In this document: in pieces, positions 10,294-60,443 of the stretch
How the letters are laid out: each line of letters begins with the position of its first letter
Position numbering within the stretch: position 1 is the first letter of the stretch
IMG/VR virus record: IMGVR_UViG_3300045256_000050
Span: 180,987 to 244,986 of that record
Reading direction: 5' to 3' (one strand)
DNA length: 64,000 nt
Translations under genes and position numbers: made by a program
Notes under the pieces: generated by a model
Seen by the model: only the letters and a program-made list of their open reading frames with translations
Told to the model about the DNA's origin: nothing
The model's database searches: none

Positions 10294-10521
10294 TTACTTC
10301 AACGGCGAATCGCCGGTCTTGTCCTTGACGGTCTTGACGCCCTTAGCGTTCTTCAAGTCAAGGTAGGCCGAAGCCGAAGTCGGTGCAAAGTATGCGTCCG
10401 GGTACTGGCTGCGAACGTAGCCGTCCGGGTACTGACCACGGATACCAGAGCGGTGCGTGTTTTCCACGGTCGCAGGCAAGGTCAGGTTGTTGGCATCGCA
10501 CCATTGGTGGAAATCTAGCAT
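10294..10521 (-). CDS. Small putative internal virion protein (CTS-like N-terminus)
   Basis: Starts MLDFHQWCDAN; GAGGGAG SD; TATATA upstream at 10557. Confidence 0.6.
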   Translation of the reverse strand: MLDFHQWCDANNLTLPATVENTHRSGIRGQYPDGYVRSQYPDAYFAPTSASAYLDLKNAKGVKTVKDKTGDSPLK

Positions 10522-10587
10522 GCTACTCCCTCATTGGTTTGTGTAAGCTTACCTTTTATATACGGCTCTCAGGAATTTTTTTCGACC

Positions 10588-11532
10588 ATGACCAATAATC
10601 CATCCGTTGAAATCGAGGAAATCAACGAGGAGACTCCGATCACTACGGGCTGCGTGTTCTGCGAGAAAACCGTCTCGATTTTCAAGGAAGAATACGATCA
10701 GAACCGGGCGGTCGGTCACGGCAACTTCTACTGTGCCTTCTGCATCCGTAACGGGCACCACCACGCCGACGCCCTGAAACACAAGCTGATCCTGTCCTTC
10801 CGAGGCGTCATCGGGTTTTACTACTGGCAGTTGTACCAGAACCCGAACCGCACTATCTATCTCTCTGAGATCGAATCTTGCGTGAGAGATCATGCGAACG
10901 TTGGATTACAGCACCCGGCCTTCGCCTACGACCCGGAGACGCTGAACTGGTACATCGATTTCCGCCTCGTCGGCAACACCCGGCACAAGTTCCCGATCAA
11001 AACCGTCCACGACAACATCGACTTCATTATGGAATGCTTCCAGTTGCAAAAGCGTGTCCCGCACCTGCACGTCAAGACGTTCCACGAGAAGTTCACCCAG
11101 GCCATCGACCTGTACCACCAGCAGCGACAGCGGCCGAAGGGCAAGAAGGTTCTCTGCCCGACCTTCGTCAACTGCGGCTCCTTTCGAGCCGATATGGATT
11201 TCGAAAGCACAAAGACCCTTCCCACTTTTTTTTTTAGTACAGACGTAGCGGGCGAGAACGCCGTCAACCTCACCGCCGTCAACGCCCACGAAGAGGGCGT
11301 GAAAGAGAAAGAGGCGGGCCAGCCCCGGATCGTCATCAACGTCAAAGAGAAGGACGGCTGTTTCGAGGCTCTTGTGGAACTACCCGGCCTGAAGGCTACC
11401 AAGCTCGTCCGGTCGGACGGCAACACCGTGTACCCGAACAAGGCGTCCCTGACCAGCGGCATCCGTGCCCTGGAACGCAAGATGGGGATGAAGTTGGAAG
11501 TCAGCTACCCGAAGCGGGTAGCTGCGAAGTGA
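10588..11532 (+). CDS. Hypothetical protein with CxxC pairs; internal T10 tract
   Basis: CVFC and CAFC near the N-terminus; homopolymer at 11226-11235. Confidence 0.6.
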   Translation: MTNNPSVEIEEINEETPITTGCVFCEKTVSIFKEEYDQNRAVGHGNFYCAFCIRNGHHHADALKHKLILSFRGVIGFYYWQLYQNPNRTIYLSEIESCVRDHANVGLQHPAFAYDPETLNWYIDFRLVGNTRHKFPIKTVHDNIDFIMECFQLQKRVPHLHVKTFHEKFTQAIDLYHQQRQRPKGKKVLCPTFVNCGSFRADMDFESTKTLPTFFFSTDVAGENAVNLTAVNAHEEGVKEKEAGQPRIVINVKEKDGCFEALVELPGLKATKLVRSDGNTVYPNKASLTSGIRALERKMGMKLEVSYPKRVAAK

Positions 11533-12363
11533 TTACTTGTACGCCGTCATTTCCTTGATCGCCTGAGCCATCCGCAACCGTTCCCAGCCCTTACGGCTGC
11601 CGAGGATCGCCTTGCCTTCCGGCCCCATCGTCTTCTCGAACTCTTGGATCAGGTACTCAATCGCCCAATCCTCCATCATCAACATGTTCGCCTGACCGGA
11701 GAAGGTCATGTCCAGGTGACAGGCGGCTCCCGGAATCGGCACGATCAAACTCCGACTCTTCTCCCTCAACTCGGTGAAGATTTCGTGGTCGTGCGGGTGG
11801 TCGCCGCTCGTCCACTTCTTCCAGATGTCGATGTCCTCCAGCAGCGTCTTAACCTTCACCCCGAACGTCATGCAAGTGCTGATCGTGTACCGCCAGTGAC
11901 CCAGGGCCGTGCGTAACACCCTGGACGACTCGCCGCCGCCGTAAGCCTTCGTGTACTTGTCTGGGTGGTCGTAAAGCGTAACGTAGTCGGACATCTTCAA
12001 GCCTTCTTCGATCAGCTTGACCGCCCGGCCTTGATGCAGGTAGTCGTCTTCACTGAAGTAAACGATGTCGTCGTAGTCCAGGTTGTCCACAGCGAGTTCG
12101 ATGGCGTGGAAGGCCGACCCGGCGTTGCCGAGTTGCGTTTCCTCAATCGGAAGGCCCGTCTCGTTCACCATCTTGAACGTCTCACGGGTGCAGTTGTCGG
12201 CTATGATCGTGATGGGAGGGGTTTTGCCCTTCTCCATCACGTCCTCGGTGAAGATCAGGTCGGCGAAGCATGAGAGGAAGTTCTTTAAGCAGACTTCCTT
12301 CGTGGCCCCTGGCATCTTCGGCTTGACGTAGCTCTTATCGCTTATTCTGTAAAACAAGTGCAT
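11533..12363 (-). CDS. GT-A fold glycosyltransferase (GT2-like)
   Basis: ITIIADN, GNAGS, YFSEDDYLH (DxD-like), VTLYDHPD. Confidence 0.75.
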   Translation of the reverse strand: MHLFYRISDKSYVKPKMPGATKEVCLKNFLSCFADLIFTEDVMEKGKTPPITIIADNCTRETFKMVNETGLPIEETQLGNAGSAFHAIELAVDNLDYDDIVYFSEDDYLHQGRAVKLIEEGLKMSDYVTLYDHPDKYTKAYGGGESSRVLRTALGHWRYTISTCMTFGVKVKTLLEDIDIWKKWTSGDHPHDHEIFTELREKSRSLIVPIPGAACHLDMTFSGQANMLMMEDWAIEYLIQEFEKTMGPEGKAILGSRKGWERLRMAQAIKEMTAYK

Positions 12364-18255: not shown

Positions 18256-18675
18256 TTAGTTTTCGCTGTTCAGCGTGAACTTCGGCGTCAGGTTAAGAAC
18301 GTCACCGTTAGCCAGAACACGGCTCACGGAGAAGAGTTCGGCCCACAGAGCCACACCCGACGTAGCACCGATGATCCAGTAACCGAAAATGGTCTGGCCG
18401 GTGCCCGTACACGTCCACGACTGCGGTGCGGTGCCGTAAGACGATTCGGCCTTGTTGGATACCGTAACAGCGGTGTTCCAGTTGGCACGAGAGAGGGTCT
18501 TGGCAGCGTAACCCGTGAACGTCGCTTCGACGAACGAGTTGGCACCGGAGTTCTGGTCCGGGGTGTAGTTGTTGGTGTACAACTTAAGGATGTAGTTTTC
18601 ATCGACGGACAGGGCGTCGGACAACATCTTGTCCAGAAGCTCAAGTTCGCCGAGGTTCGGTACGACTAATGGCAT
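18256..18675 (-). CDS. Phage virion/minor tail-like protein
   Basis: LKLYTNNYTP...EATFTGYAAKTL...IFGYWI...VLANGDVLNLTP pattern of small tail beta proteins. Confidence 0.65.
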   Translation of the reverse strand: MPLVVPNLGELELLDKMLSDALSVDENYILKLYTNNYTPDQNSGANSFVEATFTGYAAKTLSRANWNTAVTVSNKAESSYGTAPQSWTCTGTGQTIFGYWIIGATSGVALWAELFSVSRVLANGDVLNLTPKFTLNSEN

Positions 18676-18738
18676 ATGCAATTCTCCCAAACGAGGTTTG
18701 TAGGAATAGATATGCCTCGCTTTAATACTTTCGAAGCG

Positions 18739-18772
18739 TTTTGTAACTTGACACGCATTTTGTAACTTGACA
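18739..18772 (+). promoter_or_regulatory. Tandem 15-bp direct repeat containing TTGACA, candidate operator
   Basis: TTTTGTAACTTGACA at 18739-18753 and 18758-18772; the second copy ends on the A of the HTH gene ATG. Confidence 0.65.
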
Positions 18773-19092
18773 TGCCCAGCCCAGAAGACTTGAAGCCGTT
18801 CGTGAATGACATTGCCAATGCGGCGGTGCATTTCGGGGTTTCGGAACGGACGGTGCGTCGGTGGCTCCACGCCAGCGGGTTGACCGAGAAGAAGAGTGGC
18901 TGGGGGCCGAAGCTAAACAAGTCTCAGGTGAACGAGGTTCACCGGCTCGACCGGGAGGGCGTCAGGATCGTCGATATCGCCAAGATCATGAACGTGTCCC
19001 ACGTTGCCATCAGTAAAATCCTCAACGGCCGGACCCACACCCCGAAGGGCACGGACACGGCCATCGTTTCTGTTATCTACAACACGAATTAA
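18772..19092 (+). CDS. Double HTH DNA-binding protein
   Basis: AAVHFGVSERTVRRWL and IVDIAKIMNVSHVAISKILNG. Confidence 0.8.
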   Translation: MPSPEDLKPFVNDIANAAVHFGVSERTVRRWLHASGLTEKKSGWGPKLNKSQVNEVHRLDREGVRIVDIAKIMNVSHVAISKILNGRTHTPKGTDTAIVSVIYNTN

Positions 19093-19580
19093 CGGCCCGG
19101 CGGCTGGTACGGACCCTTGCGGGCGTCCTGTTCCGACTGCGGCGGCAGGTAGAGGTATTGGACGCAGGCGGTGATGGCCGGTAGGTACGCCCCCGTGCTG
19201 GCGAACGACTTCGGGAAGATGTTGCGCTTCGGGGCGGTGTAAAACCCGGCCTCGAAGCACTGTTGGTATTTGTTCGGGAAGCTGATCTTGCAGCCGAACC
19301 GCTTGGGGTGGCCGGTGCGTTCGCACTGGCGGTCTTTGTATACCCGGCGGACGATGGCCGTCCCGGAGATGTCGAGGACGCCGCCGTCTGTGGTGGCCGT
19401 CTTGTTGGCCGAGATCACGTTCACTTCGGCTGTGCCGCTCATATTCGCTCCCCCATCACCGTAAAAGTAGCCGTGACCGGCAAGCGAAGCGATGAGGGTC
19501 GTCCGTTGCTGTTGGGTTTGGCTCGCTGCCAAGAGGACGAGCAATTGAAGAATCGTTGCGTATTCGCTTGCGGTGGGCAT
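19089..19580 (-). CDS. Short member of the Gly-repeat virion protein family
   Basis: Two GG-repeat units plus Cys-rich C-terminus with GAYLPAITAC; TAACTA 4 nt before ATG. Confidence 0.6.
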   Translation of the reverse strand: MPTASEYATILQLLVLLAASQTQQQRTTLIASLAGHGYFYGDGGANMSGTAEVNVISANKTATTDGGVLDISGTAIVRRVYKDRQCERTGHPKRFGCKISFPNKYQQCFEAGFYTAPKRNIFPKSFASTGAYLPAITACVQYLYLPPQSEQDARKGPYQPPGR

Positions 19581-19678
19581 ACTTTAGTTACTCGGAAAAG
19601 GCAGAAATTCGGGTTGAGCGGATAAATAAACTGTCAAGCGGTATATAGAAACAGCGTCCGATGAAGGAGACACAATCT

Positions 19679-20926
19679 ATGATGAGTTACAAAGCATGGC
19701 GGACCATCAACCAGAAGTTGATGAATGAGTCTGCTCTTGGTACTTCGACCCTGGGCCTCAAGACGCCTGCTTCGTTGGGCATCACTGGAAGCAAGCTTGC
19801 TGAGATGGGTTTCCCACCACCCGAGGGCGAAGACGATGATGACCTGATGGGTCATGATGACGGCACCGAGTCGGACATCGACCCGGATGGCGACGGCGAC
19901 GTGGATGTTCCGGGTGCTGGCCCGGACCTAGACCCGGATCAAGATGCCGATGAGCTTCACGGCATGGACGACCCGGCGATGCTCGCTCTCTTGGGTGACG
20001 ACGACGGCGAACAGGGCGATGATGAAGTTGCACCGGAAGGTGACGACGCATCGGCTCTCGGCGGCGACGACGGCATGATGGGCGGCGACGAGGACGAGTT
20101 CTCGTTCGACCCGGCCGACCTGGGTGACGACGCTCACGCAGTTCCCGACATGGGCAAGTCGGCCGACCTGAGCAACCTGCTCGGCGGCATGGGCGTGTCC
20201 CCGCATGACCAAGCCCCGGACATGGGCTTCGGCGACGAAGGCGATGAGGGTGCTGACATCAGCAGCCTGTTCGGTGGTGCTGGCGACGAAGGCGATGAGG
20301 GTGGCGAAGACGCCGCTCCGGCTAAGGGTGCCAACCCGTTCGGCGGCGAAGACGAGGGCGACGATGACTCCGCTCCTCAAGGCGAAGCCGACGATGACAA
20401 CATCGAAGACGAACTCGACAGCGACATGGACGACGACGATTCCGACGACGCAGAGTCCGACGAGGGCGGCGACAAGGAGTCGGAGTCCGATGACGACAAG
20501 AAGTTCATGGGCAAGGGCTGGTGCAACAAGATGATGAAGAAGGAAGGGAAGGAGTTCCCGGCTTTCTTGAAGAAGGGTAAGGACAAGGACGACAAGAAGG
20601 GCGGTAAGAAGGCTCCCCCGTTCGCCAAGAAGGGTGAGAAGAAGAAGGACGACAAGGGTCCGAAGCCGTTCGAGTTGTTCAAGAAGGGTGGCAAGAAGAA
20701 GGAAGAGAAGGTTGACGAAACCTCGTTCTTCCGCAGCCTCACCAAGCAGGCCGCTGGCGACGTTCGCAAGCTGAAGGAAGACTCCCTGGTGGCGTCCCCG
20801 AAGCAAGCCAAGCGTGAGCCGGGTCCGGGCGAAGTGGGCTACGCCCCGAGCGGTCGGGTTGGTCAACTCCCGAGCGTTGCGTCCTACAACGAGTGGAAGG
20901 CCAAGAACTTCCCGAAGAAGAAGTAA
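19679..20926 (+). CDS. Acidic disordered protein with Lys-rich tail; putative prohead core/internal protein
   Basis: MMSYKAWRTINQKLMNES leader, long D/E/G tract, K-rich block; AAGGAGA SD; TAAATA 19623 and TATATA 19642. Confidence 0.7.
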   Translation: MMSYKAWRTINQKLMNESALGTSTLGLKTPASLGITGSKLAEMGFPPPEGEDDDDLMGHDDGTESDIDPDGDGDVDVPGAGPDLDPDQDADELHGMDDPAMLALLGDDDGEQGDDEVAPEGDDASALGGDDGMMGGDEDEFSFDPADLGDDAHAVPDMGKSADLSNLLGGMGVSPHDQAPDMGFGDEGDEGADISSLFGGAGDEGDEGGEDAAPAKGANPFGGEDEGDDDSAPQGEADDDNIEDELDSDMDDDDSDDAESDEGGDKESESDDDKKFMGKGWCNKMMKKEGKEFPAFLKKGKDKDDKKGGKKAPPFAKKGEKKKDDKGPKPFELFKKGGKKKEEKVDETSFFRSLTKQAAGDVRKLKEDSLVASPKQAKREPGPGEVGYAPSGRVGQLPSVASYNEWKAKNFPKKK

Positions 20927-20942
20927 CCTTCACCAAATGAAG

Positions 20943-20968
20943 AAGCCCGGCGAAAGCCGGGCTTTTTT
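20943..20968 (+). terminator. Rho-independent terminator
   Basis: AAGCCCGGC-GAAA-GCCGGGCTT followed by TTTT, 17 nt after the stop. Confidence 0.9.
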
Positions 20969-20992
20969 CGTTTACAGTTCTTCGGAGCCGAA

Positions 20993-21080
20993 AGCCCCTA
21001 CAGTGAAACTGCTACCCCCACAAGCGAGCGACCGAAGGGAGCGAGACGTGGGGGTAGCCCTTTAGGGTAGGGGATGAAGG
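20993..21080 (+). mobile_element. IS200/IS605-type subterminal hairpin region (candidate left end)
   Basis: Nested stems CCCCTAC/GTAGGGG and CTACCCCCAC/GTGGGGGTAG plus CCC-TTTA-GGG...GGGGATGAAG; the TTTA loop also occurs in the right end at 24161. Confidence 0.45.
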
Positions 21081-21174
21081 CGATGGGCTAAAGATGGGCT
21101 TAAAAGTTTCTATCCCTCAAAGCACAAACACAACACAGTACCACAGGACACAATCAGGACTACGACCACCCCGC

Positions 21175-21420
21175 TCAAGAGTTCCTACATTTTTCCTGAC
21201 CTTCCAGTTCGTACAACTGGAACAATACCTCCTGATACTTCCCCTCGTCCGTATCAGGGTACACGTCCTTGAAGTGCTTCATCCCCACGTCGGACTGGAC
21301 GTACTCCAACAGCCGCATCCGGGCTTCGTTCTCGTCCCTGCCAGCAGGACCGTAGAACTCACCGATAGTACCGACTACCAATTTAGGTTTTCCGACGTAA
21401 ACCGGGCAAAACTCAACCAT
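21175..21420 (-). CDS. Hypothetical protein
   Basis: GGAGG SD, lies just downstream of tnpA. Confidence 0.55.
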   Translation of the reverse strand: MVEFCPVYVGKPKLVVGTIGEFYGPAGRDENEARMRLLEYVQSDVGMKHFKDVYPDTDEGKYQEVLFQLYELEGQEKCRNS

Positions 21421-21447
21421 ATCTTCCTCCACCTTATCTTAGTGTAC

Positions 21448-21861
21448 TCAACCCTGTTCTTCGATGTACTTCTTGATCGTCTCCGTACTGGCGTCTCCAG
21501 TGGTACACACGAAGTACCCGTCACTCCAGAAGGTCTTCTCCTTCCAGAAGTGATACGCCAAGAAGTTACCAAACTTCTTCCAGATGTGGAAGGTCGATTG
21601 GCTCTTGAGCCGGGTGGCGATACTGGTCGGGGACAGGGTGGGTGGAGCGTCTACGAGAACGTGGATGTGGTCGATGTCCACTTCCATCACGTCAATGGCG
21701 AAACCGCTTTTGTAGGCGATGTCGGTGAACAGCGTCTTGATCTCGTCAGCGATGTTCTGCTTGGCGAGCAGCTTCTTCCTGTACTTGCAGGCGAAGACGA
21801 AGTGGTACTTGAGCAGGTACTTGCTGTGGCTGGCGTGGTGGTACTTATCTTCCTTCGGCAT
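21448..21861 (-). CDS. tnpA: IS200/IS605 Y1 (HUH) transposase
   Basis: YHFVFACKYRKK, DHIHVL (HUH), LKSQS, FWSDGYF, IKKYIEEQ (catalytic Tyr). Confidence 0.95.
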   Translation of the reverse strand: MPKEDKYHHASHSKYLLKYHFVFACKYRKKLLAKQNIADEIKTLFTDIAYKSGFAIDVMEVDIDHIHVLVDAPPTLSPTSIATRLKSQSTFHIWKKFGNFLAYHFWKEKTFWSDGYFVCTTGDASTETIKKYIEEQG

Positions 21862-21877
21862 GACACTCTCCAGAAGT

Positions 21878-21908
21878 GAGACAAGCCCGGCAGAGCCGGG
21901 CTTGTCTC
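21878..21908. repeat. Perfect 14-bp hairpin upstream of tnpA (IS end or terminator)
   Basis: GAGACAAGCCCGGC-AGA-GCCGGGCTTGTCTC. Confidence 0.8.
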
Positions 21909-21923
21909 TGTTCGAGAGCCAGA

Positions 21924-22304
21924 TCAGACCCGAACCGGCTTGCAGTTCAGCGGACCCATCAGACCGGCTGGCTGCGGGAAGTACCCCCACGGCTTGCTAC
22001 CCCAGATGCTCGCCCCAGCGTCCCCGTCCTTCCAGCGGATGACCACGAACTCCTCCTCCCGCTCCACCGAGAGGTAGGTGATCCTGCCCGTCATCTGGTC
22101 GTCCGAGAACTTGTCTACGAGCGACTTGGCGTTGTCCCACGACCCCTTGATCCTGAGCATGTTACACCCGGCGTCCGGGTCCGTGGCATCAGTCGCCGTC
22201 CGGCTGATGTGAATGTGGCTCTGACCCGCCACCAGTCCTGCCGCTGGAATGGCGATCCCAAAACTTGTTCCCGCCATCGCTTTCAGTGCGTTCCGTCTGT
22301 TCAT
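21924..22304 (-). CDS. Putative Tat-exported protein
   Basis: MNRRNALKAMAGTSFGIAIPAAGLVAG twin-arginine leader. Confidence 0.6.
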   Translation of the reverse strand: MNRRNALKAMAGTSFGIAIPAAGLVAGQSHIHISRTATDATDPDAGCNMLRIKGSWDNAKSLVDKFSDDQMTGRITYLSVEREEEFVVIRWKDGDAGASIWGSKPWGYFPQPAGLMGPLNCKPVRV

Positions 22305-22391
22305 CTTCTTGCTCCTGTTTCTCGCCGTATCTGAACCGGATGCCGAACACCAGTCCGAGGGGCGGTTTCAACGGCTCCACCCTGATAAGAG

Positions 22392-22877
22392 TTAACTCAA
22401 ACACTTCATGTTCTCCCAAACGTGGTACTCGTCGTCGTCTTGCACCACGCCTACCTTCCTCATCCCCGCCTTTCCGAACAACCTGTCGTAGATCGCCGCC
22501 CTCTGGTTCGTTGGCTCCTTCTCCACCCCATCCACCGTCTTTCGCTTCTCCGGGGTGTACACCATCCTCAAGCCCGCCTTCGACAACTCCCCTCCGAACT
22601 CTTGCAACTTCCGCATGAGCGGCATGGTACTCGGCTGAACCGACTTCGACACGGTACTCAGGTCTGCACCCAAATCGTCAGTGTTAAAGAACGCCACGAT
22701 GACGTAGGGGATGTTGCTGGCGTTGTCCGGTCCTCGGAGTTGGGCGTAGATGGTTTTGTCGAGGAACGGTATCCAGTACACGTCGTTTTCGGGCTGGATG
22801 TTGCCGAACACCTTCTGGACGACGGCGTGGAGTCGGTCTTGCTGCTCCTCGTTTTCGAGCCATGTCTTGAAACGCAT
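22392..22877 (-). CDS. Putative internal virion protein (CTS-like N-terminus)
   Basis: Starts MRFKTWLENEE; TAGATA 4 nt before ATG. Confidence 0.7.
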   Translation of the reverse strand: MRFKTWLENEEQQDRLHAVVQKVFGNIQPENDVYWIPFLDKTIYAQLRGPDNASNIPYVIVAFFNTDDLGADLSTVSKSVQPSTMPLMRKLQEFGGELSKAGLRMVYTPEKRKTVDGVEKEPTNQRAAIYDRLFGKAGMRKVGVVQDDDEYHVWENMKCLS

Positions 22878-22972
22878 ATCGTATCTATCCGGTCGGGTCT
22901 GTCAATCCCCGGCGAATAAAAATTTCCGGTTTTCCGTCCGAAAACAGAACCCAGCCGACTAACTAATACCAG

Positions 22973-24136
22973 ATGGCAAACCGGCATAACTACTCGTACC
23001 GTTTTCGGCTAATGCCGAACCAAGAACAACGAGTGCTTCTCGCAAAGCACTTCGGGGCGATCCGGTACGCCTACAACCACTTCCTCGCCGCCCGCAAGGA
23101 CAAGTACCTCACGGCGAAGAAGTCCAGCAACTACTACGGCGACTGCAAGGACTTGACCGAGTTGAAGAAGACCCTGCCGTGGATGAAGGAAGTGTACTCG
23201 CAGTCCTTGCAGTTCTCGCTCAAGTGCTTGGATGCTGCCTACAACAACTTCTTCGCTGGCAGAGGCAAGTTCCCGGTCTTCAAGGCGAAGCACGCCCACC
23301 AGTCCTTCCGTGTCCCACAGAACGTCAGGGTGGTCGAGAACAAGTTGGTTATCCCGAAGTTCCTTGAGGGGATCAGGATGGTCAAGCATCGGGAAGTCGA
23401 GGGCGAAATCAAGTTCTGTACTATCAGCAGGAATAAGGCGGGGCAGTACCACGTCTCGATCACCGTCGAGCGAGACATACCGCAGTTGCCGGTGGTCGAT
23501 ACGGAAGTCGGTGTCGATCTCGGCATCAAGACGCTGGCAACGTGCAGCGACGGCAAGGTGTACGAGAACAAGAAACCGTACCGGAGGTTGAGCCGCAGGA
23601 TCAAGATGGTACAGCGGCGGTTGAGCAAGAAGAAGAAGGGAAGCAAGAACAGGCAGCGAGCGAAGTGTCGGCTCGCCAAGATGCACCTGAAAGTCAAGAA
23701 CATTAGGAACGACCACTTGCACAAGACGACGACCAAGATCATCCGTGAGAACCAAACGGTGTACTTGGAGACGTTGAATGTGCAAGGCATGATGAAGAAC
23801 CGCTGCCTTGCCGGGGCTATCGCTGACGCTGCGTTCTACGAGACACGCAGGCAGTTAGAGTACAAGGCGGGCTGGTACGGGAGGGTGGTCAAGTATCTTG
23901 ACCGTTGGTTCCCGTCCAGTAAAACGTGCAGTGGTTGTGGCTTCATCAAGCAAGACCTTCGGCTGTCGGATCGAGAGTGGTCGTGTCCTCGTTGTGGCGA
24001 GGTACATGACCGTGATTTGAATGCGGCGAAGACGATCTTGCAGCAGGGTAAAATTGAGAGTAAACTACCGTTGGAACGACGGGAAGTAAAGCGTGTGGAC
24101 TCAGGAAGAACTCCGACTGAACTTTTGGTCGGCTGA
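22973..24136 (+). CDS. tnpB: TnpB RNA-guided endonuclease (IS605/IS1341 type)
   Basis: N-terminal HTH (YRFRLMPNQEQ...FGAIRYAYN), RuvC I VGVDLG, II YLETLNV, III DRDLNAA, Zn finger CSGC/CPRC. Confidence 0.96.
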   Translation: MANRHNYSYRFRLMPNQEQRVLLAKHFGAIRYAYNHFLAARKDKYLTAKKSSNYYGDCKDLTELKKTLPWMKEVYSQSLQFSLKCLDAAYNNFFAGRGKFPVFKAKHAHQSFRVPQNVRVVENKLVIPKFLEGIRMVKHREVEGEIKFCTISRNKAGQYHVSITVERDIPQLPVVDTEVGVDLGIKTLATCSDGKVYENKKPYRRLSRRIKMVQRRLSKKKKGSKNRQRAKCRLAKMHLKVKNIRNDHLHKTTTKIIRENQTVYLETLNVQGMMKNRCLAGAIADAAFYETRRQLEYKAGWYGRVVKYLDRWFPSSKTCSGCGFIKQDLRLSDREWSCPRCGEVHDRDLNAAKTILQQGKIESKLPLERREVKRVDSGRTPTELLVG

Positions 24137-29282: not shown

Positions 29283-29736
29283 AGACGGGCCGCAGAAGGA
29301 ACTCCTCCAGTCGTTCGGCCTTGTTGAACACCCGGTCCCCGGCTACCCGCCGAGGACGGAGAAGAACGTTACCGACGGCACGGCCACCATCCGCTTCGCA
29401 GTTGACTTCGGCACGGCGGGCGAGCGATGCACGCTGAACTTCTGCAAGAAGCACGACCGGCATGTACTGAGTATCAACGTCCTCGAACCCGAGCCGGTTG
29501 AGGAAGTCGTCGAGTGGCTGGAGCGCCACGACGTAGAAGTCCTCAACGTGGCGGGGAACCGGGAAAAGACCTGCCCTGGGTTGTGTAAGTTTGTCGCCGG
29601 GTATCTGGCGACGGTCATCTGGAAAATGAAAGGGATCGAGAAAGGCTTCTCGATCCCCGAATTGACTGCTCACATCAAGGCGTTAGCCGAAGGCCCGTCC
29701 GTTACTGAATCCCATTCTTCTCCTGAGACTCCATGA
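29164..29736 (+). CDS. SLOG-family nucleotide-binding protein (MoCo-carrier/cpYpsA-like)
   Basis: KIISGGQTGADQGGL, GGTAPKGW, RTEKNV, LNVAGNRE. Confidence 0.85.
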   Translation: MRLRKIISGGQTGADQGGLWAGRITGMETGGTAPKGWMTEDGPQKELLQSFGLVEHPVPGYPPRTEKNVTDGTATIRFAVDFGTAGERCTLNFCKKHDRHVLSINVLEPEPVEEVVEWLERHDVEVLNVAGNREKTCPGLCKFVAGYLATVIWKMKGIEKGFSIPELTAHIKALAEGPSVTESHSSPETP

Positions 29737-30679
29737 ACTTCCGTGGGTCGATGATCCCGAACCCGTAGTAGAACTTCGGGTCTTGGTAGTTCCCGTTCAC
29801 GACCGGAGTCGTATATTGGCGGAACAGCGTCCGATAATCTTCGGCCGTGTCCAGCTTCAACGTGTTCCCGTGAGCCTTATTGTAACTCTTCACCAGGGCG
29901 GCTACGCCGCAGGCGAACGGGCCAGCCATGCTGGTGCCCGAGAGCTTGGCGTACCAGTCGTCCGGCACGGTGGACAGGATGTCCACGCCCGGTGCCATGA
30001 AGTCCAACCGATTGCCGGTGTTACTGAACTTCGCCCGGCGCATCGACTCGTCGATGGCCCCGATGCTGATGCACTCGGGGTATGCAGCCGGGTAGAACAC
30101 TTCCTTCGTGTTACCGGCGTTGCCCGCTGCGACGAAGGCGATGCAGCCCTTCGAGGCGGCGTAGTCGATGGCATCCCGGACCTGTTGTACAGGAACCGGA
30201 GCGCCCAGCGACATCTGGATGAAGTCGCAGCCGTCGTCGGCAGCCTTGCGGACTGCGGCGGCTACGTTCTTCAAGTTGCCGTTGCCCTTGTCGTCTAGGG
30301 CTTTGTACGGCCGGACCTTCGCACCGGGGCACACGCCCACCACGCCGATGTCGTTGTTCTCGGCCACCAGGATGCCGGTGACGTGCGTGCCGTGGCCGTT
30401 CCCGTCCATCGGGTCGTTGCTGTTCTTGACGAAGTTCCAGCCCGGTAGCAGGTTGTCTACCAAGTCCGGGTGGTCGGTGTCGCAGCCGGTGTCGATGACG
30501 CCGATGACGACGCCCTCGCCCTGGCTGAACTTCCAGGCGTCGGGCAGGTTGAATGCACTGATGTGCCAACCCGACTGTTGTGTTACTTCTTGGATCGAGA
30601 AGACATCTTCCCGCTCGTAGGGGAACAACGAGCAAACGATGTCGCAGTCCCCGACTGTTCTTTTGAAACGCTTAGCCAT
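29702..30679 (-). CDS. Subtilisin-like S8 serine protease, no signal peptide
   Basis: VIDTG (Asp), GHGTHVTG (His), AAGN, SGTSMA (Ser); GAGGAGG SD; TAGATA upstream. Confidence 0.95.
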   Translation of the reverse strand: MAKRFKRTVGDCDIVCSLFPYEREDVFSIQEVTQQSGWHISAFNLPDAWKFSQGEGVVIGVIDTGCDTDHPDLVDNLLPGWNFVKNSNDPMDGNGHGTHVTGILVAENNDIGVVGVCPGAKVRPYKALDDKGNGNLKNVAAAVRKAADDGCDFIQMSLGAPVPVQQVRDAIDYAASKGCIAFVAAGNAGNTKEVFYPAAYPECISIGAIDESMRRAKFSNTGNRLDFMAPGVDILSTVPDDWYAKLSGTSMAGPFACGVAALVKSYNKAHGNTLKLDTAEDYRTLFRQYTTPVVNGNYQDPKFYYGFGIIDPRKFMESQEKNGIQ

Positions 30680-30726
30680 AGTCTTCCTCCTCACGTTAGA
30701 CTTGTCCAGCGTGTTATCTATGGCTA

Positions 30727-31857: not shown

Positions 31858-31863
31858 GCCATA

Positions 31864-32070
31864 TTAGATCAACCCCGTCTTGCTTCTTTCCTGCTTGTGA
31901 GTCAGTTTCTTGCGTAGCTTCGGGCTGAACCGCATGTTGCCGAAATACTTGTTGGCCGTGAAGTCGTCGCCCACGCCGCAGGCGGCACACGGGGCAGCCT
32001 GCGCCATCATGGCGTTCTCACGGAGGTTTTGTTGCAGAACCTTGTTTCTGTATGTGTTGAAGTCTTCCAT
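31864..32070 (-). CDS. Small protein, CTS-like N-terminus
   Basis: MEDFNTYRNKVLQQNLREN. Confidence 0.55.
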   Translation of the reverse strand: MEDFNTYRNKVLQQNLRENAMMAQAAPCAACGVGDDFTANKYFGNMRFSPKLRKKLTHKQERSKTGLI

Positions 32071-32447
32071 TATCGCCCCTTCTTTCCAAATGGACCCATG
32101 TTAGCCGTCGTGACCGCTCCGGTATCCCCGGTCGGAAGCATTTCCTGCTTTTCTTCGTTCTCCCCGTCCGGGGTCTTGTTGTGACGGTCCAGATCGCTCT
32201 GTGCGGCCCGAATCTTCTTCGGCCACGATGTCACCTGCTCCCGCCGCACCCCGAGGAGTTCGGCGAGGCCGTCGCTGTTGGCACACAACTGGATGAAGTC
32301 GTCCCAAAAGGACGGACCTTCATCCCCACGGAGGTTGTCCCCGGCACGGACCGCCTGGACAGCCTTTGTTTCCAAACCGCTGTCCATAAGGGGCGATCCT
32401 GCCGCCTCTTTATCGAGTTGTTCCCATAGCTGACAGAAAGAAACCAT
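32070..32447 (-). CDS. Hypothetical protein, CTS-like N-terminus
   Basis: MVSFCQLWEQLDKE; acidic. Confidence 0.6.
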   Translation of the reverse strand: MVSFCQLWEQLDKEAAGSPLMDSGLETKAVQAVRAGDNLRGDEGPSFWDDFIQLCANSDGLAELLGVRREQVTSWPKKIRAAQSDLDRHNKTPDGENEEKQEMLPTGDTGAVTTANMGPFGKKGR

Positions 32448-32451
32448 TATG

Positions 32452-32754: not shown

Positions 32755-32802
32755 GAGTATTCCTCCTAAGATACGTTATTTATCCTCAACCGGCTCAATC
32801 TT

Positions 32803-33528: not shown

Positions 33529-33541
33529 GAGGGTATCTACG

Positions 33542-53294: not shown

Positions 53295-53720
53295 ATGAGC
53301 GTAATTCAACAACTTTTCAGTGACCCGATTTCGGTGCCGATCCCCCTGGAGTTTCAACCGACGGGTACGTTCACCGAGTCGGCTGTGGTTGACAACACGA
53401 CGGACCGATTTATTTCGGCCGACATCCAGCTTTCCGTTCAGCCGGACAACGGCAGTCCGGGCGGCGACGGATTCATTAAGGTCTACCTGATGCGGTCGCT
53501 GGACAACGTGGAGTGGGACGACCCGACGGAAGACTGCACCCTGTTGGCCGTGTGGACGGCGAACCAGGGCGGGGTGAACTTCACGCACAGCATTGACACA
53601 GACGTGGTGGGCAACCTGCCGCCGTATTGGAAGATTCTGGTCGAGAACCGGACCGGGACGGCTTTCGATGGGACTGGCAACTCGCTGAGTTTCGTCGGAA
53701 AGAAGTTCGAAACCGTCTAA
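53295..53720 (+). CDS. Putative virion beta-sandwich protein
   Basis: TATATA at 53268; beta-rich; heads a virion-type operon. Confidence 0.6.
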   Translation: MSVIQQLFSDPISVPIPLEFQPTGTFTESAVVDNTTDRFISADIQLSVQPDNGSPGGDGFIKVYLMRSLDNVEWDDPTEDCTLLAVWTANQGGVNFTHSIDTDVVGNLPPYWKILVENRTGTAFDGTGNSLSFVGKKFETV

Positions 53721-53732
53721 CCTGGAGATTCC

Positions 53733-55232
53733 GTGCGTTACCACATTCGACCACAGCACCATTACATGCCGAGCTTGGCAAACTACGGTCATTCGTGGGG
53801 CCGGAGCAACGTTGCGTCTGCTGTCCCGGACAGCATCCAGACCGGGCCGTATGAGAATCAGGCCAGATCATTCCGACCGAGAGGCGCACCCGGCAAGGCG
53901 TACTTCCTCTACGATCCGGGAGACAACGGACAACCGGAACACCGCTGGCTCGCCAAGTGGAGTATGTTACCCAGCATGTACGAAGGGACGGGTGCGACCG
54001 TCTCTTTCGGCTTCAAGTGGAGCGGGCAGCAGGGCCACGTCATGTGGTTCGGCGACGTGACTAATGAGTTTCCCCAGGGGATCGAGGCGAAGATCACCTT
54101 CGAATCGGAAATCTCTCAATTCTTCCTACGCTTCGGCATCTTTGTCAATGCTACGGAGTCTGTGGGCACTGTCACGGCTCCGCTGATCTCGGGCGAGGAT
54201 TACCACTTCACGGCTGTGTTTCTGCCGGAGATTGTAAACCTCGGCGAGTTTAGCGGCATCGGGCGGTGGAGGATATACCGAAATGGTCTGCTCGTTGACA
54301 GCAGTTCCACCACTGGCTTCAACAACATCGACATCAGCATCACGACGCCTAGCTCCTTCTACGTCGGGACTGATTACCTGGGCGACCGGCTGTTCAACAG
54401 CCCGATCTACGATTTGAAGATGTTCTACCGGCCTCTCAGCCACAACGAGGTATGGAACAGTTACTTCTACGATTACATCAAGGAACAGAAACAAGTCCCG
54501 CTGACCGCCCTGGCTGTTGAATCAGACGGCCCAGACCGGACAGCTTCCGGCGGGGCAAGGGTTGGCGGTAACGGTGACGTAACGGCCGACTATGACATCG
54601 TTGCTGACGGCGGTGCTGTACTTGCTGGTATGGCCGACGAATTCTACGTCCACAACGGCAGCGTTGTGTATGATGAGTTCGCATCGGGCGGTGCCGTACT
54701 GGCCGGTTCGGCAGTTGTAAGAAAGATCGTCCCGTTCAGTGTAACGGGTGGTGCCGTACTGGCCGGTTCGGCAGTTGTAAGAAAGACGTTCAGACACACC
54801 GCAACGGGCGGGGCGGTGGTAGCCGGGTTCGCACTGAGAACGGCCAACTACTTCGTCCAAACGACCGGCGGCATCGAGGCAGGCGGGTCGCTGACAACCA
54901 TCGCTACCGAATACGCTTCTGGCGGCGTGTCGTGCGGCGGCAGCTTTGTACTGAAGAGAGGCACGGTACGTCCGAAGCGGCAGAGCGAGTGCTTTGACGC
55001 AAAGGTGTGCAAGCTACGGATTCAACAGATTGGTTCACTCAGTCGTCGAGTTTACATTGAAGACCAATGTCGTCGGCCGTTCCGTCTGTGGGATGGTTAT
55101 GTGCCGGGTGCGGCGTCGTGCCCAGGCGAAATACAGTTCACCCGCATTCTGAAGGTTCAGACGGCAGTCGGGTACAAGAACCCGAGGGATAGAGGCAAAT
55201 TGCCTAACAGTAACTTCGGCGACGTGAGATAA
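53733..55232 (+). CDS. Virion protein: LamG/ConA-like domain + Gly repeats + Cys C-terminus
   Basis: DYHFTAVF...IYRNG...FYVG...IYDLKMFYRPLS..EV LamG pattern; TGGAVLAG repeats; GTG start. Confidence 0.75.
   Translation: MRYHIRPQHHYMPSLANYGHSWGRSNVASAVPDSIQTGPYENQARSFRPRGAPGKAYFLYDPGDNGQPEHRWLAKWSMLPSMYEGTGATVSFGFKWSGQQGHVMWFGDVTNEFPQGIEAKITFESEISQFFLRFGIFVNATESVGTVTAPLISGEDYHFTAVFLPEIVNLGEFSGIGRWRIYRNGLLVDSSSTTGFNNIDISITTPSSFYVGTDYLGDRLFNSPIYDLKMFYRPLSHNEVWNSYFYDYIKEQKQVPLTALAVESDGPDRTASGGARVGGNGDVTADYDIVADGGAVLAGMADEFYVHNGSVVYDEFASGGAVLAGSAVVRKIVPFSVTGGAVLAGSAVVRKTFRHTATGGAVVAGFALRTANYFVQTTGGIEAGGSLTTIATEYASGGVSCGGSFVLKRGTVRPKRQSECFDAKVCKLRIQQIGSLSRRVYIEDQCRRPFRLWDGYVPGAASCPGEIQFTRILKVQTAVGYKNPRDRGKLPNSNFGDVR
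54690..54786 (+). repeat. Intragenic direct repeat, 37 nt x2, 60-nt period
   Basis: GGTGCCGTACTGGCCGGTTCGGCAGTTGTAAGAAAGA at 54690 and 54750. Confidence 0.9.
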
Positions 55233-57151
55233 TGAGCGAAGAAGCCCCACTACTCGGATCGGACTCGGCCGTCTTAGGCACGATGTCCATTGGTGAAACG
55301 GATGCCCAGACGGCGTACACCGCCGCCCTGGGTACGTCCGACTCCACGTTCGGGTACATGGTGATGGGCGTCCCGCCGACCACCGACGACAACTTCACTT
55401 CGATCCTCGGTATCGAAGCGTCCCGGCCCGCCAACATTGAACCCGCAGCAGTCGAAGACGCCGCCCGTTATGACGAAGTGGCGTCCGGTGGTGTGGTCGT
55501 CGGCGGTGGCAACCGGATTTACAACGAAGTCGGTTCTGGTGGTGTTCTCGGCGGCGGTACGGCTCGCTTCGGCCGGATCATTAACTCGGCCAACATCGTT
55601 AACGCATCCGGTGTGCGTGGCGGCGGCACGGCCCGCTTCAACTGGTTCGTCTACCGCACGGCGAGCGGCGGTGCCGTCGTCGGCGGGTTCAGCCCGGCCG
55701 AACACGGCATCATTCCGAGCGGCGGGGCCAAAGTCGGTGGCAGCTTCATCAACCAGCACATTCTGGCTCGTACTGCAACCGGCGGTGCCCGACCGGGTGG
55801 TTTGTGCATTAACACCGTTCGTTTGGTGTACACCGCTACGGGTGGTGCTAAGGGTGGCGGTATCGGTGATCCGACTTACACCCCAGGCGTGTTCGTCGGT
55901 GGTACGGCCACGAACACCCAGATCATGCCCCGTGTGGCATCGGGTGGTGGTCGTGTTGGCGGTACGGCCGTTCTCGGCGGTAACACAACCTTCGTGGCGG
56001 CGGGCGGTGCCCGTCCGGGTGGTACGGCTCGGTTCAACACCATCAAACCTGCTTTCGTTGCGAGCGGCGGTGCGGTTGTATCTGGTAGCGGTAACGATAC
56101 TGAAGATCATCCGGGGTTGTTCGGCGATGGCGGCGTGGTCGTCGGTGGTTCCGCAACTCGCCAGTTCTATGCGATGTGGGTCGCTACAGGCGGGGCACGG
56201 GTCGGCGGCTCGGTGCCCACCATTGAGTACATCTCCCAGGTCGCCACCGGCGGCGTGGTGTGTGCAGGTATTGCGGTTGTGGAGGCCGGGACGTTCACCT
56301 TCGGCGGGGCCGACGTGGGCGGATCGGCTACCATCCAGATCACGTCAAACAAGACGGGGACCGGCGGGGCTGTCTGTGCTGGTGTGTCTCTTACCCGACA
56401 CTTGTTACGGTATATCTCTACGGGCGGCGGCGTGTGCAGCGGCCATGCGAATCCGTTCGGCACGGCCCGAGACTACACGGCCACGGGCGGGTTCCGGGCT
56501 GGCGGACCGCTGGTTCTGTTCTCGATCTTCAACATCCGCCCGCAAGGTGGGGCACGGCCCGGCGGCACCGCCATCCCAAACACGACCATCAGAACTTCTG
56601 GTGGAGCGGTGTGTGCAGGTACGGCCCGAGTTGTTAAAGTCCAAGTTGCCCAGACATCGGGCGGCGTGGTCTGCGGCGGTGCTACGCAGCCGATCAGTTA
56701 CATTGGCACCTACGGCGGGGCTGTGGTCAGCGGCCAAGCCACCATCAACAACTTCATGTATCGGACGGCCTCGGGCGGTGCGGTGTGTGGGGGCACGGCT
56801 GTCGCCAGCTTGGTCACTGTTTCTTATGTCGCCTCGGGTGGTGCGGTGGCTGGCGGTTCGGGCGAATTCAAACGAGACACGTCGGGTCGAATCCGGTGTG
56901 AGCCGCCTGCCCTGGCCTGCCCGATCATCAAGGTGAAGCCGCCGGGTCGCCCGTGCGTCAAGGAGAAGGTGCTGCGTGGCGGCATCGTTCTGGCGGCGAC
57001 GGTGTGCAAGTACAACAAGAAGGTCGGGAAGCTGTTGAAAGACCCGGCCAACACCCAGACCATCACCCAAACGGCCATCGGCTTCAGTTCGGGCAACAGG
57101 TCTACACCGTACCAGCCGCCGGGCACCCCGAAACCGGGACAGCCGCTCTGA
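55232..57151 (+). CDS. Gly-rich repeat virion/fibre protein
   Basis: More than 20 (S/T)GGAVxGG units; Cys-containing C-terminus; paralogue of 15568-17340. Confidence 0.8.
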   Translation: MSEEAPLLGSDSAVLGTMSIGETDAQTAYTAALGTSDSTFGYMVMGVPPTTDDNFTSILGIEASRPANIEPAAVEDAARYDEVASGGVVVGGGNRIYNEVGSGGVLGGGTARFGRIINSANIVNASGVRGGGTARFNWFVYRTASGGAVVGGFSPAEHGIIPSGGAKVGGSFINQHILARTATGGARPGGLCINTVRLVYTATGGAKGGGIGDPTYTPGVFVGGTATNTQIMPRVASGGGRVGGTAVLGGNTTFVAAGGARPGGTARFNTIKPAFVASGGAVVSGSGNDTEDHPGLFGDGGVVVGGSATRQFYAMWVATGGARVGGSVPTIEYISQVATGGVVCAGIAVVEAGTFTFGGADVGGSATIQITSNKTGTGGAVCAGVSLTRHLLRYISTGGGVCSGHANPFGTARDYTATGGFRAGGPLVLFSIFNIRPQGGARPGGTAIPNTTIRTSGGAVCAGTARVVKVQVAQTSGGVVCGGATQPISYIGTYGGAVVSGQATINNFMYRTASGGAVCGGTAVASLVTVSYVASGGAVAGGSGEFKRDTSGRIRCEPPALACPIIKVKPPGRPCVKEKVLRGGIVLAATVCKYNKKVGKLLKDPANTQTITQTAIGFSSGNRSTPYQPPGTPKPGQPL

Positions 57152-57208
57152 TTTTCCTTTACTGAGGGCAGATCGAGGGTACAATCCTCCTTAACTGGAG
57201 GGCAAGCG

Positions 57209-58267
57209 ATGCAGTTCCGCATGTACCACACGAGCTACGATTTCGCCAAGATCGTCGGCGACGTTGCCGGGCAGAAGATGCCCGCCGTGGACAACTTCTA
57301 CAAGTTCGCCATCAACTCCGAGTGGCAGCGGCGGGCCGCTCAGCAGTCGCTTCACTCCTTCCTCTCGCCCAACAACCAGAACGCCCGAGCGGCTGAAATC
57401 AATCAGTTGATCGCCGAGTCGTCCTGGTACGAGAACGGCAAGCCGTACTACAACCTGCACCCTCGCATGATCGACGTGTTCGGCCGTGCCAAGCTGAACT
57501 TCCCCAGCAAGTACATCGAGTTCCCGTTCCAGACCGTCGCCGTCAACTTCGCCCTCGAAGACGACACGTTCAAGCTCGACGAGACGCACCGTCTCCAGTC
57601 GTGCCTCGTCTTCCGTGGCAAGGTCCGTGATCCGCTCAAGCCGATCCCGGAACACGAGCCGAACTGCATCATGATCTACATGGACTGGAACGAGCGGCAC
57701 AAGTCGGAGGTTTACAGCGAACACAAGCGGCGCACGTTCACGCTGGGCGAGCCGATCATGACGTGGCGGCGGTGGACGTGGGACGCCGACGAGACGGTGG
57801 ACGACGCCCTGAACCGGCTGCCGATGGATTTGTCGATGGCGAAGGGCATCCGCATTCCCGACGCCATGATCGAGAAGGCGATCAAGCTCGTCGTCTCGGT
57901 GGCTTTCTTGCACAAAGACGAAAGCCCCATCGTCGTCCCGCACCTGCTCAACCGGGACGCCAAGCAGTTGCGTCTGCGTGAGGCGGCGGACCGGACAATT
58001 AAAGAACTCCACGACAAGGCGGCGAAGGAGCGTGGGGCACGGGGTTGGCTGGTCGGGTCGGAGGAAATGTTCGACCACGGGCACATCGGCCCGGCCCCGG
58101 AGCAAGAGGAACACAAGGTCACGGGCCGGGAGCTACAGTTCGCCCACATCGTCTCGGGTTACTGGAAGCTCTGCCGGTACGGCCCTAAGATGGAGTCCGG
58201 CCGGGTGCGGTGGATCATGCCTCACGTCCGTGGCTGGGGCAAACCCTTCAAACACGAAGAGGAATAA
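57209..58267 (+). CDS. Hypothetical phage protein
   Basis: 352 aa; C-terminal H.V.G.W...GP....RWI.PH.RG motif; GGAGG SD. Confidence 0.7.
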   Translation: MQFRMYHTSYDFAKIVGDVAGQKMPAVDNFYKFAINSEWQRRAAQQSLHSFLSPNNQNARAAEINQLIAESSWYENGKPYYNLHPRMIDVFGRAKLNFPSKYIEFPFQTVAVNFALEDDTFKLDETHRLQSCLVFRGKVRDPLKPIPEHEPNCIMIYMDWNERHKSEVYSEHKRRTFTLGEPIMTWRRWTWDADETVDDALNRLPMDLSMAKGIRIPDAMIEKAIKLVVSVAFLHKDESPIVVPHLLNRDAKQLRLREAADRTIKELHDKAAKERGARGWLVGSEEMFDHGHIGPAPEQEEHKVTGRELQFAHIVSGYWKLCRYGPKMESGRVRWIMPHVRGWGKPFKHEEE

Positions 58268-58268
58268 C

Positions 58269-58775: not shown

Positions 58776-58780
58776 ACGAA

Positions 58781-58816
58781 AAAGCCCGGCCGCTCGGAGG
58801 AGAGCGGCCGGGCTTT
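58781..58816. terminator. Bidirectional terminator
   Basis: AAAGCCCGGCCGCTC...GAGCGGCCGGGCTTT between convergent genes. Confidence 0.85.
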
Positions 58817-58826
58817 CGTAGCGAAG

Positions 58827-59726: not shown

Positions 59727-59800
59727 TGTAGTTTCCTTTCGGTTGTTGACAGTTGTAGGTTGTTTTCGTAACATGCGATCAGAAACTTGAGCGGGGGTTG

Positions 59801-59806
59801 TAAATA
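59801..59806 (+). promoter_or_regulatory. T4-like late promoter core (representative of about 20 copies)
   Basis: TAAATA; variants TAGATA, TATATA and TAACTA recur in intergenic gaps upstream of virion-type genes. Confidence 0.6.
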
Positions 59807-59810
59807 AAAC

Positions 59811-60443
59811 ATGACTAGCTTCAAAGAGTTCTTCGAGGCCAACGACCCGATGACGGGCATCCCGCACACCGTCAAGACGGCGACCGTGCCCGCCCCCGCA
59901 ACACCGCCCGCTCCTCGCAACACGATGACGCAACAGATGGATCAGCGTGTCCAGACGGGCAAAGGCTACGAGGCCAAGATTATTCAGAAGCTCATCTCGG
60001 GCGGGCTGAAGATCACGCCCGTGACCGGCCGACAGGACATGTTCGATAAGATCGACGGCATCTGGGAGAACGGCCCGGCCGGGTCCGGCGGGATGCAGAT
60101 CAAGTACCGTGACAGCGGCTACGACATCCTGATGGAAGTTCGGAAGGGTAGCAACCCAGGCCGGGACATGGTGGGCAAGAGCGTGTACTACACGGTCGTC
60201 CCGAAGGACGGTGAGTTCGCCTACATCTTCAAGACGGTGGACTTGAAGAAGCTGGTGCAGGACGCATTGAATGAGCTACAGCAGGACGGCGGCTTCGGCG
60301 GGAAGCGGGAGTTTCATTCGAGCGATCAGGTCGAACTGCGGCAGACCCGTGACCCGGCCGACAACACGCCGAAAATCATGGCCTTCATCCCGATTGACGT
60401 GCCTGTTCCGATTCGCCGCCAGCGAGTCAACCTGTTCAAATAA
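59811..60443 (+). CDS. CTS-like leader + PD-(D/E)xK nuclease-like fold protein
   Basis: MTSFKEFFEAN leader; GYEAKI...DKIDG...MQIKYR; TAAATA 4 nt before ATG. Confidence 0.6.
   Translation: MTSFKEFFEANDPMTGIPHTVKTATVPAPATPPAPRNTMTQQMDQRVQTGKGYEAKIIQKLISGGLKITPVTGRQDMFDKIDGIWENGPAGSGGMQIKYRDSGYDILMEVRKGSNPGRDMVGKSVYYTVVPKDGEFAYIFKTVDLKKLVQDALNELQQDGGFGGKREFHSSDQVELRQTRDPADNTPKIMAFIPIDVPVPIRRQRVNLFK

Follow-up and report, generated by a model that had tools for sequence, protein, structure and literature searches.

Why should otherwise unrelated genes of one phage genome begin with the same short peptide? The question is raised by the final 64 kb (64,000 nucleotides, hereafter the window) of the 244,986-bp viral contig IMGVR_UViG_3300045256_000050. 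In this stretch, a first-pass annotation proposed that seven unrelated open reading frames (ORFs) share a leader resembling the capsid-targeting sequence (CTS) of phage T4, that all of them lie behind a late promoter motif, and that together they form a set of packaged effector proteins. We refer to each ORF by the window coordinate of its start codon: 10521, 19679, 22877, 32070, 32447, 33528 and 59811; a contig position equals the window position plus 180,986. We find that the leaders of three of them, 22877, 33528 and 59811, lie far beyond chance, and that the contig encodes T4-type head genes. The leader is, by its sequence, the counterpart of the T4 CTS and probably its homologue. We think it reasonably probable that the T4 core-targeting system operates here in a distant, much larger relative, and that the leader-bearing proteins are packaged.

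The CTS concept dates from 1996 (Mullaney & Black), and in T4 the sequence is found on IPI, IPII, IPIII and Alt (reviewed in PMC3012670, PMC5694885 and PMC8442874). It reads MKTYQEFIAE (PMC8442874), and T-even phages are already known to place a conserved CTS in front of internal proteins that vary (PMC3012670). What is of interest here is therefore not the concept, but the scale of its use and the enzyme-like cargo. Literature searches, with most subscription journals outside their coverage, returned no report of the leader in huge T4-type phages.

A conserved leader on three genes of the window

All seven ORFs and their N-termini are present where the first-pass annotation had placed them, and the translations agree. 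The protein bodies are as dissimilar as it had claimed (every E > 0.4 in an all-against-all BLASTP comparison), and none of the seven proteins matches a Pfam or PHROG family. The leader itself is another matter: according to matrix ranks and conservation, it is common to 22877, 33528 and 59811, is found as a variant in 10521 and 19679, and is not supported in 32070 and 32447.

The pattern M.{0,2}[FY][KQ].[WF], suggested by the same annotation for a scan, was run on the 742 ORFs that begin with ATG and encode 40 aa or more in the six frames of the window; it picks up four genes (19679, 22877, 33528 and 59811) and nothing else, and misses the remaining three. A looser pattern, M.{1,2}[FY]..[WFY], matches the window 21 times, and many of these matches fall in non-coding frames. 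To avoid circularity, we built a position matrix from 45 leaders, none of which comes from the window, and applied it to all 2911 possible window starts. The leader consensus is M-x-x-F-K-E-W-L-E..E or, including the preferred early positions, M-(K)-(T/S)-F-K-E-W-L-E-x-x-E. Genes 22877 (23.2 bits), 33528 (21.3 bits) and 59811 (17.7 bits) occupy the first, second and third ranks among the 2911 starts, and the next-best start, at 12.6, belongs to a non-gene frame. Gene 10521 is marginal (score 3.8, rank 19), 19679 is weak (score -0.5, rank 84), and 32447 and 32070 rank 240 and 809, respectively.

Shared N-termini of this kind could be due to chance, or be a by-product of a translation-initiation constraint on the first codons. 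The loose pattern is common enough to invite such an explanation, and 32070 and 32447 score as background; yet the three best starts stand apart from all others by a wide gap, the leader is conserved inside three unrelated families (those of 33528, 22877 and 10521), it is 15-20 times more frequent at gene starts than at internal Met codons in independent genomes, and its synonymous codons vary with genome GC. We therefore regard chance as a highly improbable source of the shared N-termini, and for 22877, 33528 and 59811 it is refuted.

Chance is, on the other hand, the best reading for 32447 (125 aa, MVSFCQLWE..., 32070-32447, minus strand) and 32070 (68 aa, MEDFNTY..., 31864-32070, minus strand), neither of which is supported as leader-bearing. 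The N-terminus of 32447 is identical in the related contig L211, yet identity amounts to 85% over the full length of the protein, and nothing is specific to the leader. The counterpart of 32070 in L211 starts MEDFTTFRNK..LKE, with an N-terminal conservation equal to that of the rest of the protein (71%). Since both score at chance level and their N-termini are no more conserved than their bodies, we drop them from the set.

The best-scoring leader belongs to 22877 (22392-22877, minus strand), a gene whose 161-aa product starts MRFKTWLENEE... and has a body of unknown function. In five homologues (63-100% identity), F3, W6, L7 and E8 are invariant. Back-to-back with this gene lies a TnpB / IS605 OrfB-type gene (22973-24136, plus strand; HTH_OrfB_IS605, OrfB_IS605 and Cas12f1-like TNB), and the two share a 95-nt intergenic region in which a match to TTGACA-N16-TACGAT abuts the ATG of 22877. 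This sigma-70-like promoter (22905-22878) cannot drive the conserved ORF as drawn, its -10 box being in contact with the ATG, and we leave it uninterpreted.

The product of 33528 (32803-33528, minus strand; 241 aa) starts MGFKEWLLLE/DG..., where the slash, here and below, marks a candidate cleavage position, and its body is likewise of unknown function. The leader M[RG]FKE[FW]L.LE is kept by 25 homologues (47-90% identity), with E10 present in at least 90% of them. The structure model of this protein is poor (pLDDT 52): it has a helix at residues 3-9 and is too weak for a fold search. Gene 33528 follows dam with a 13-nt gap, in an operon (29702-34354, minus strand) that comprises the dam methylase, 33528, a 100-aa ORF, 32447, 32070, a 376-aa ORF and an S8 subtilase; the gene order is preserved in L211, a relative with 49.5% GC, at protein identities of 62-91%. 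We considered the subtilase (29702-30694) as a leader-processing enzyme and rejected it: homologues of 33528 occur without a subtilase, and an S77 protease is present.

Gene 59811 (59811-60443, plus strand; 210 aa, MTSFKEFFEA...) gives the clearest view of how the leader is attached. Its AlphaFold2 (AF2) model (pLDDT 91) has a leader helix at residues 4-10, a low-confidence, presumably disordered linker at 11-37 and a compact folded domain at 43-205. The best fold matches of the domain are the PD-(D/E)xK enzymes I-Ssp6803I (2ost, E 2e-3) and Hjc resolvase (2wj0), and D82, K98, R100, D119 and K188 are invariant; this fold-level hint suggests that the body may be PD-(D/E)xK nuclease-like. An exhaustive HMMER search with 59811 yields 131 representative homologues of the body (residues ~40-195). 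Of these, 35 match the loose leader pattern at their N-terminus, with examples such as MNFKSWLQNE, MENFKKWLEANE, MKTFKEFLEM and MRTFEQYIAEQ, while many others begin directly with the body; the linker between leader and body is variable. A leader that is present or absent before one and the same domain fits the expected look of an address tag.

In many leader-bearing homologues of 59811 (P0032, P0034, P0036, P0048, P0062, P0063, P0065, P0119 and others), the linker contains a further conserved motif, RRGPVPGAFG[KR]. Its PGAFG core is absent from the real genes of the window.

Use of the leader across related phages

The leader is also found on additional unrelated genes of related contigs, and the set of leader genes differs from one contig to another. 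L002 has leader genes starting MGAFKNWLERKE, MGTSFKNWFLEQE and MLPDFMKWLTEK; L005 has nine leader genes within 20 kb, one of them with a ParB_N domain; and L006 has two. The only GenBank phage record matched by 10521 is LR756511.1, the complete 595-kb genome of an uncultured phage, in which the frequency of the leader can be measured genome-wide. On the basis of a crude gene call and a matrix score of at least 10, the leader is found at 28 of 1004 gene starts, versus 4 of 2862 internal Met codons (p 4e-13). Among the leader proteins of this phage are a C39-like peptidase and a 2H phosphodiesterase-like protein, along with two that exceed 1000 aa.

A similar result is obtained from the 1.97 Mb surrounding the capsid genes of ~190 relatives, where the leader occurs at 60 of 4330 first ATGs versus 12 of 12898 internal ones (15x, p 4e-25). 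Across related huge phages, the N-terminal enrichment over internal Met is thus 15- to 20-fold. The leader codons track genome GC, with TTC, AAG and CTG/CTC in GC-rich phages and more TTT, GAA and TTA in AT-rich ones, which argues for selection on the peptide rather than on the RNA.

The gp23-type capsid protein is at least 78% identical at the amino acid level across the best 80 of ~350-390 related viral contigs (L022-L210). These relatives range from ~33% to 58% GC, on contigs of up to 533 kb; their GC spread and sizes point to a clade that is very large and diverse in composition.

Likeness to T4 and the head module

In the T4 record NC_000866, ipI starts MKTFKEFTST, and ipII and ipIII start MKTYQEFIAEA. 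One gene of LR756511.1, starting MKTFKEFAALKES, has a first heptapeptide (MKTFKEF) identical to that of T4 ipI. Ahead of the first aromatic residue, at positions left out of the matrix, the leaders favour M-K-T/S as in T4. As a control, the matrix was applied to 100 kb of T4, where it places gp22, inh, ipI, ipII and ipIII among the top 21 of 1055 starts (p 8e-7).

The likeness extends to the genes that build the head. A GC-biased DNA pattern designed on YKGDSYMD, an invariant peptide of the capsid protein, led us to a T4-type head module on the same contig, outside the window (L191, contig 114,326-128,854); two capsid-protein scans, each considering the best 80 relatives, had missed this contig. 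Searches with T4 gp17, gp20, gp21 and gp23 match the module with tblastn E-values of 2e-20 to 8e-44. It comprises a T4-type large terminase (Terminase_6N); an 858-aa gp20 portal protein (L191:4164-6740, contig 118489-121065; Portal_T4 5.7e-70); and an operon with a 620-aa protein, a gp21-type Peptidase_S77 prohead protease (6.6e-26; 34% identity to T4 gp21), an acidic gp22-like, scaffold-like protein with the motifs MIAE/A and KIE/A, encoded between the protease and capsid genes at L191:9828-10751, and the gp23 capsid protein (Gp23 7.5e-84). From the portal to the capsid gene, the module occupies L191:4164-12234. In LR756511.1, homologues of gp17, gp20, gp21 and gp23 are found in T4 order. The likeness to the T4 CTS announced by the first-pass annotation thus holds on three counts: the MKTFKEF start of ipI, a modular and conserved leader, and a T4-type head module on the contig.

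Two side observations concern the same module. An intein interrupts the portal protein (Intein_splicing, residues 156-333). The ORF at L191:3133-3690, located between the genes for terminase and portal, has matches to the 2'-5' RNA ligase / 2H phosphoesterase superfamily (2.6e-11) and to the anti-CBASS Acb1 family (2.1e-07).

Two conserved variants, 10521 and 19679

Gene 10521 (10294-10521, minus strand) encodes a conserved 75-aa protein with the leader variant MLDFHQWC.... It has 132 homologous clusters; among the 120 listed, identities are 59-87% and contigs reach 652 kb. Nearly all homologues begin with a short M..F..W[CA] motif, most commonly M[IL]DF.xWC, and the gene probably encodes a small head-core or internal protein. 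For the neighbouring ORF 10588-11532, the ESM Atlas yields only sub-threshold leads.

Gene 19679 (19679-20926, plus strand) encodes a 415-aa protein that starts MMSYKAWRTINQKLMNE/S and has a very acidic middle part, a Lys-rich tail and a pI of 4.2. We prefer ATG 19679 to ATG 19661 as its start because an AAGGAG Shine-Dalgarno sequence lies 9 nt upstream of the former. The homologue in LR756511.1 starts MISYKQWKILSENL, keeping MxSYKxW. In that genome, the homologues of 19679 and 10521 are ~0.7 kb apart with two small ORFs between them, and no head gene was found near them with Pfam. The composition of 19679 recalls T4 gp67, which is acidic, and gp68, which is basic. Residues 13-16 of 19679, LMNE, recur in a WLMNE/A stretch of the capsid protein of the same phage, within the region aligned with the N-terminal FLTEAEIGGD stretch of T4 gp23. 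We take the maturation cut of T4 gp23 to fall after the Glu of this stretch. Gene 19679 is thus a candidate for a prohead core or scaffold-type protein.

These two genes raise the possibility that the leader does target the prohead core, but that the proteins serve in assembly or structure, as scaffold-like, size-determining or DNA-condensing factors, and are degraded or retained rather than injected as effectors. Both are conserved core genes of the clade and stand behind the promoter motif of the head genes, 19679 combines a gp67/gp68-like charge pattern with a capsid-like LMNE site, and T4 gp22, gp67 and gp68 are core-targeted and then degraded (PMC5694885). The canonical leader, however, is carried by variable proteins that lack clade-wide conservation and have enzyme-like bodies, one of which has homologues with and without the leader. 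We consider this explanation unlikely for the set; for 10521 and 19679 themselves, conserved late genes encoding head-core or internal structural proteins are more likely than variable effectors. What survives of the packaged effector set of seven is smaller than first proposed: three genes, or five with the variants, are supported as leader-bearing, and the two variants look head-core-like rather than effector-like.

Promoter motifs

The first-pass annotation placed all seven ORFs behind the late motif, directly or in an operon. This is not confirmed: a GTATATA late-promoter-like motif directly precedes only two of the seven, 10521 (10557-10563, minus strand, 36 nt upstream) and 19679 (19641-19647, plus strand), and is not found directly upstream of 22877, 33528 or 59811. 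The TATATA core at 10557-10563 is palindromic and also faces a plus-strand gene starting near 10588.

The same motif is associated with the head genes. In the head module, the GTATATAAG motif (ccGTATATAAG) stands at L191:7158, before the operon that begins with the 620-aa gene and continues through protease and scaffold to the capsid gene. TATATA is likewise found in LR756511.1 in front of the head operon, of terL and of the 10521 homologue; there, it lies at most 70 nt upstream of 11 of the 28 leader genes versus 69 of 976 other genes (p 3e-6). Another sequence, CCAGGTAAC, occurs upstream of terL and the portal gene, yet is not enriched in the window.

More intergenic TATATA sites are present in the window at 9815, 41705 and 53268, 27-55 nt upstream of gene starts; one of them precedes a tail-fibre-like operon (53295-58267) that includes a Laminin_G_3 protein. 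The position of these sites, including the one before the tail-fibre-like operon, fits a late-promoter role.

Proposed role of the leader

By analogy with T4, we infer the following course of events. The leader, as a short N-terminal amphipathic helix, would bind the scaffolding core and so dock its carrier protein onto it during prohead assembly. The prohead (S77) protease would then remove the leader after a nearby Glu, and the mature protein would stay in the head and enter the host with the DNA, where it may act as an effector, comparable to T4 IPI* or Alt with their anti-restriction and host-modifying activities. Glu contexts compatible with (L/I)-x-E provide candidate cleavage sites: LLE10 in 33528, FFE9/A in 59811 and LMNE16 in 19679. 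The candidate cargo and effector proteins are those encoded at 22392-22877, 32803-33528 and 59811-60443.

Much of this arrangement parallels T4. In both systems, a leader of ~10-20 residues (M-K-T-[FY]-[KQ]-E-[FW]-[IL]..E) stands on otherwise unrelated proteins, a Glu follows the helix and the bodies vary between relatives; ipI MKTFKEF may be set beside 59811 MTSFKEF. The gp21-type S77 protease, gp22-like scaffold, gp23 capsid protein and gp20 portal of T4 all have counterparts encoded here. Differences are found in the consensus, which prefers W-L-E after K-E; in the number of genes, which is ~10x larger, with ~30 per genome in the relative LR756511.1; and in the cargo, which has enzyme-like bodies (PD-(D/E)xK, ParB_N, C39 peptidase and 2H phosphoesterase) where the T4 set consists of small basic proteins. 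The genomes also differ: these phages, of 245-690 kb, are uncultivated, and their leader system is known from sequence alone.

Several observations weigh against the packaging of the leader proteins through a T4-like core. Cargo of the ParB_N or nuclease-like kind could equally act inside the infected cell. With 28-34 genes, or ~3% of all genes, the leader set of LR756511.1 is far larger than that of T4. The T4 core and internal proteins reach only 2-5 bits in our matrix, the internal proteins themselves being modest at 2-3 bits. The Glu that follows the helix has no fixed position among leaders, and 22877 has no clean (L/I)-x-E, its closest contexts being WLE8 and LENE10. GTATATA does not directly precede any of the three canonical leader genes of the window, and TTGACA-type boxes lie upstream of 22877 and 59811. 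Finally, the clade consists of uncultivated huge phages with genomes of 245-690 kb, and neither megablast nor tblastn found close relatives of the region, of 33528 or of 59811 among GenBank phages.

Some of these points would suit a leader that docks to another phage hub (for instance a chaperone or an intracellular compartment, or else an adaptor for secretion, membranes, a protease or degradation), with proteins that act in the cell and are not packaged. The size of the set, already apparent from the nine genes in 20 kb of L005, would then be less surprising, as would the possible in-cell enzymes in it (ParB_N, C39-like peptidase, 2H phosphodiesterase-like and nuclease-like proteins) and the three canonical window genes that lack the late motif. 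Against such a hub stand the near-identity of the peptide with the T4 CTS, extending in LR756511.1 to an identical MKTFKEF, and the T4-type core genes on the contig; moreover, the leader genes of LR756511.1 are enriched behind the promoter motif of the head genes, the matrix also picks T4's own core proteins, and no alternative hub was found. We therefore give this explanation a small share of our confidence and retain the T4-like core-targeting system as the preferred reading.

Short address peptides are known from other systems. Encapsulin cargo-loading peptides and the encapsulation peptides of bacterial microcompartments consist of a short amphipathic helix and a flexible linker, and direct unrelated enzymes into a shell. 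Those are cellular shells without proteolytic removal of the peptide, and no such shell genes are seen here. In phage P1, whose head assembly system is different, we know of no short consensus leader common to unrelated proteins. A likeness to P1 exists nevertheless: the Dar anti-restriction proteins are reported to enter the head of this myovirus via N-terminal targeting information and to be injected (PMC9024508). Giant phages of the phiKZ/SPN3US type also load many head proteins, with propeptides that are cut after Glu by the prohead protease and are thought to function in targeting (PMC5694885, PMC7411985). However, these propeptides are mostly longer than 100 residues and protein-specific (PMC5694885), whereas here a ~10-residue helix with a short linker is shared. 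There is also no confirmed counterpart of the gp22 scaffold in that group (PMC5694885), while the protease and capsid protein described here match T4 Pfam families directly.

Genomic surroundings

The window has a GC content of ~57% and carries genes on both strands. Phage-type genes in it include an RNA ligase, a Dda-like helicase, a Dam methylase, a phiEco32-type COOH-NH2 ligase, the S8 subtilase, tail-related proteins, TnpB and a group II intron. The intron splits a Thg1-like gene (tRNA-His guanylyltransferase family; 184-3382, minus strand) into exon 1 (3382-3131) and exon 2 (~780-184). Its recognizable parts, on the same strand, are Rfam D1-D4 (3033-3111), domain V/VI (792-867) and an ORF for a reverse transcriptase (RT)/maturase/HNH protein (888-2570). 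A tRNA-Leu gene with anticodon TAG is found at 62409-62483 (minus strand), at the lower-GC end of the window.

Short fragments of the region 18600-23000, some of them exact matches, are present in four wastewater RNA-library runs. Their depth is low and patchy and they are possibly DNA-derived, which makes them uninformative on expression; they do indicate that the phage or close relatives are present in wastewater.

Conclusions

The proteins that huge phages deliver with their DNA are largely unknown, since almost none of these phages has been cultured. If the leader works like the T4 CTS, an N-terminal profile would provide a catalogue of packaged proteins from sequence, with ~30 entries per genome in the complete relative, and this catalogue would flag candidate anti-defence and host-takeover proteins. 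The leader could also serve as an address with which foreign proteins are directed into large capsids, and the T4 core-targeting mechanism would prove to be of far greater age and broader use than one would gather from the few internal proteins of T-even phages.

A wider proposition is that the T4 CTS is an ancient, portable address label used across the huge T4-type clade (~390 IMG/VR contigs sharing the capsid protein, genomes of up to ~690 kb, GC 33-58%) on dozens of unrelated enzymes per genome; we see this as evenly balanced between true and false. Were it true, the whole injected proteome of these phages, including a pool of first-strike anti-defence and host-takeover proteins, could be listed with a 10-residue profile.

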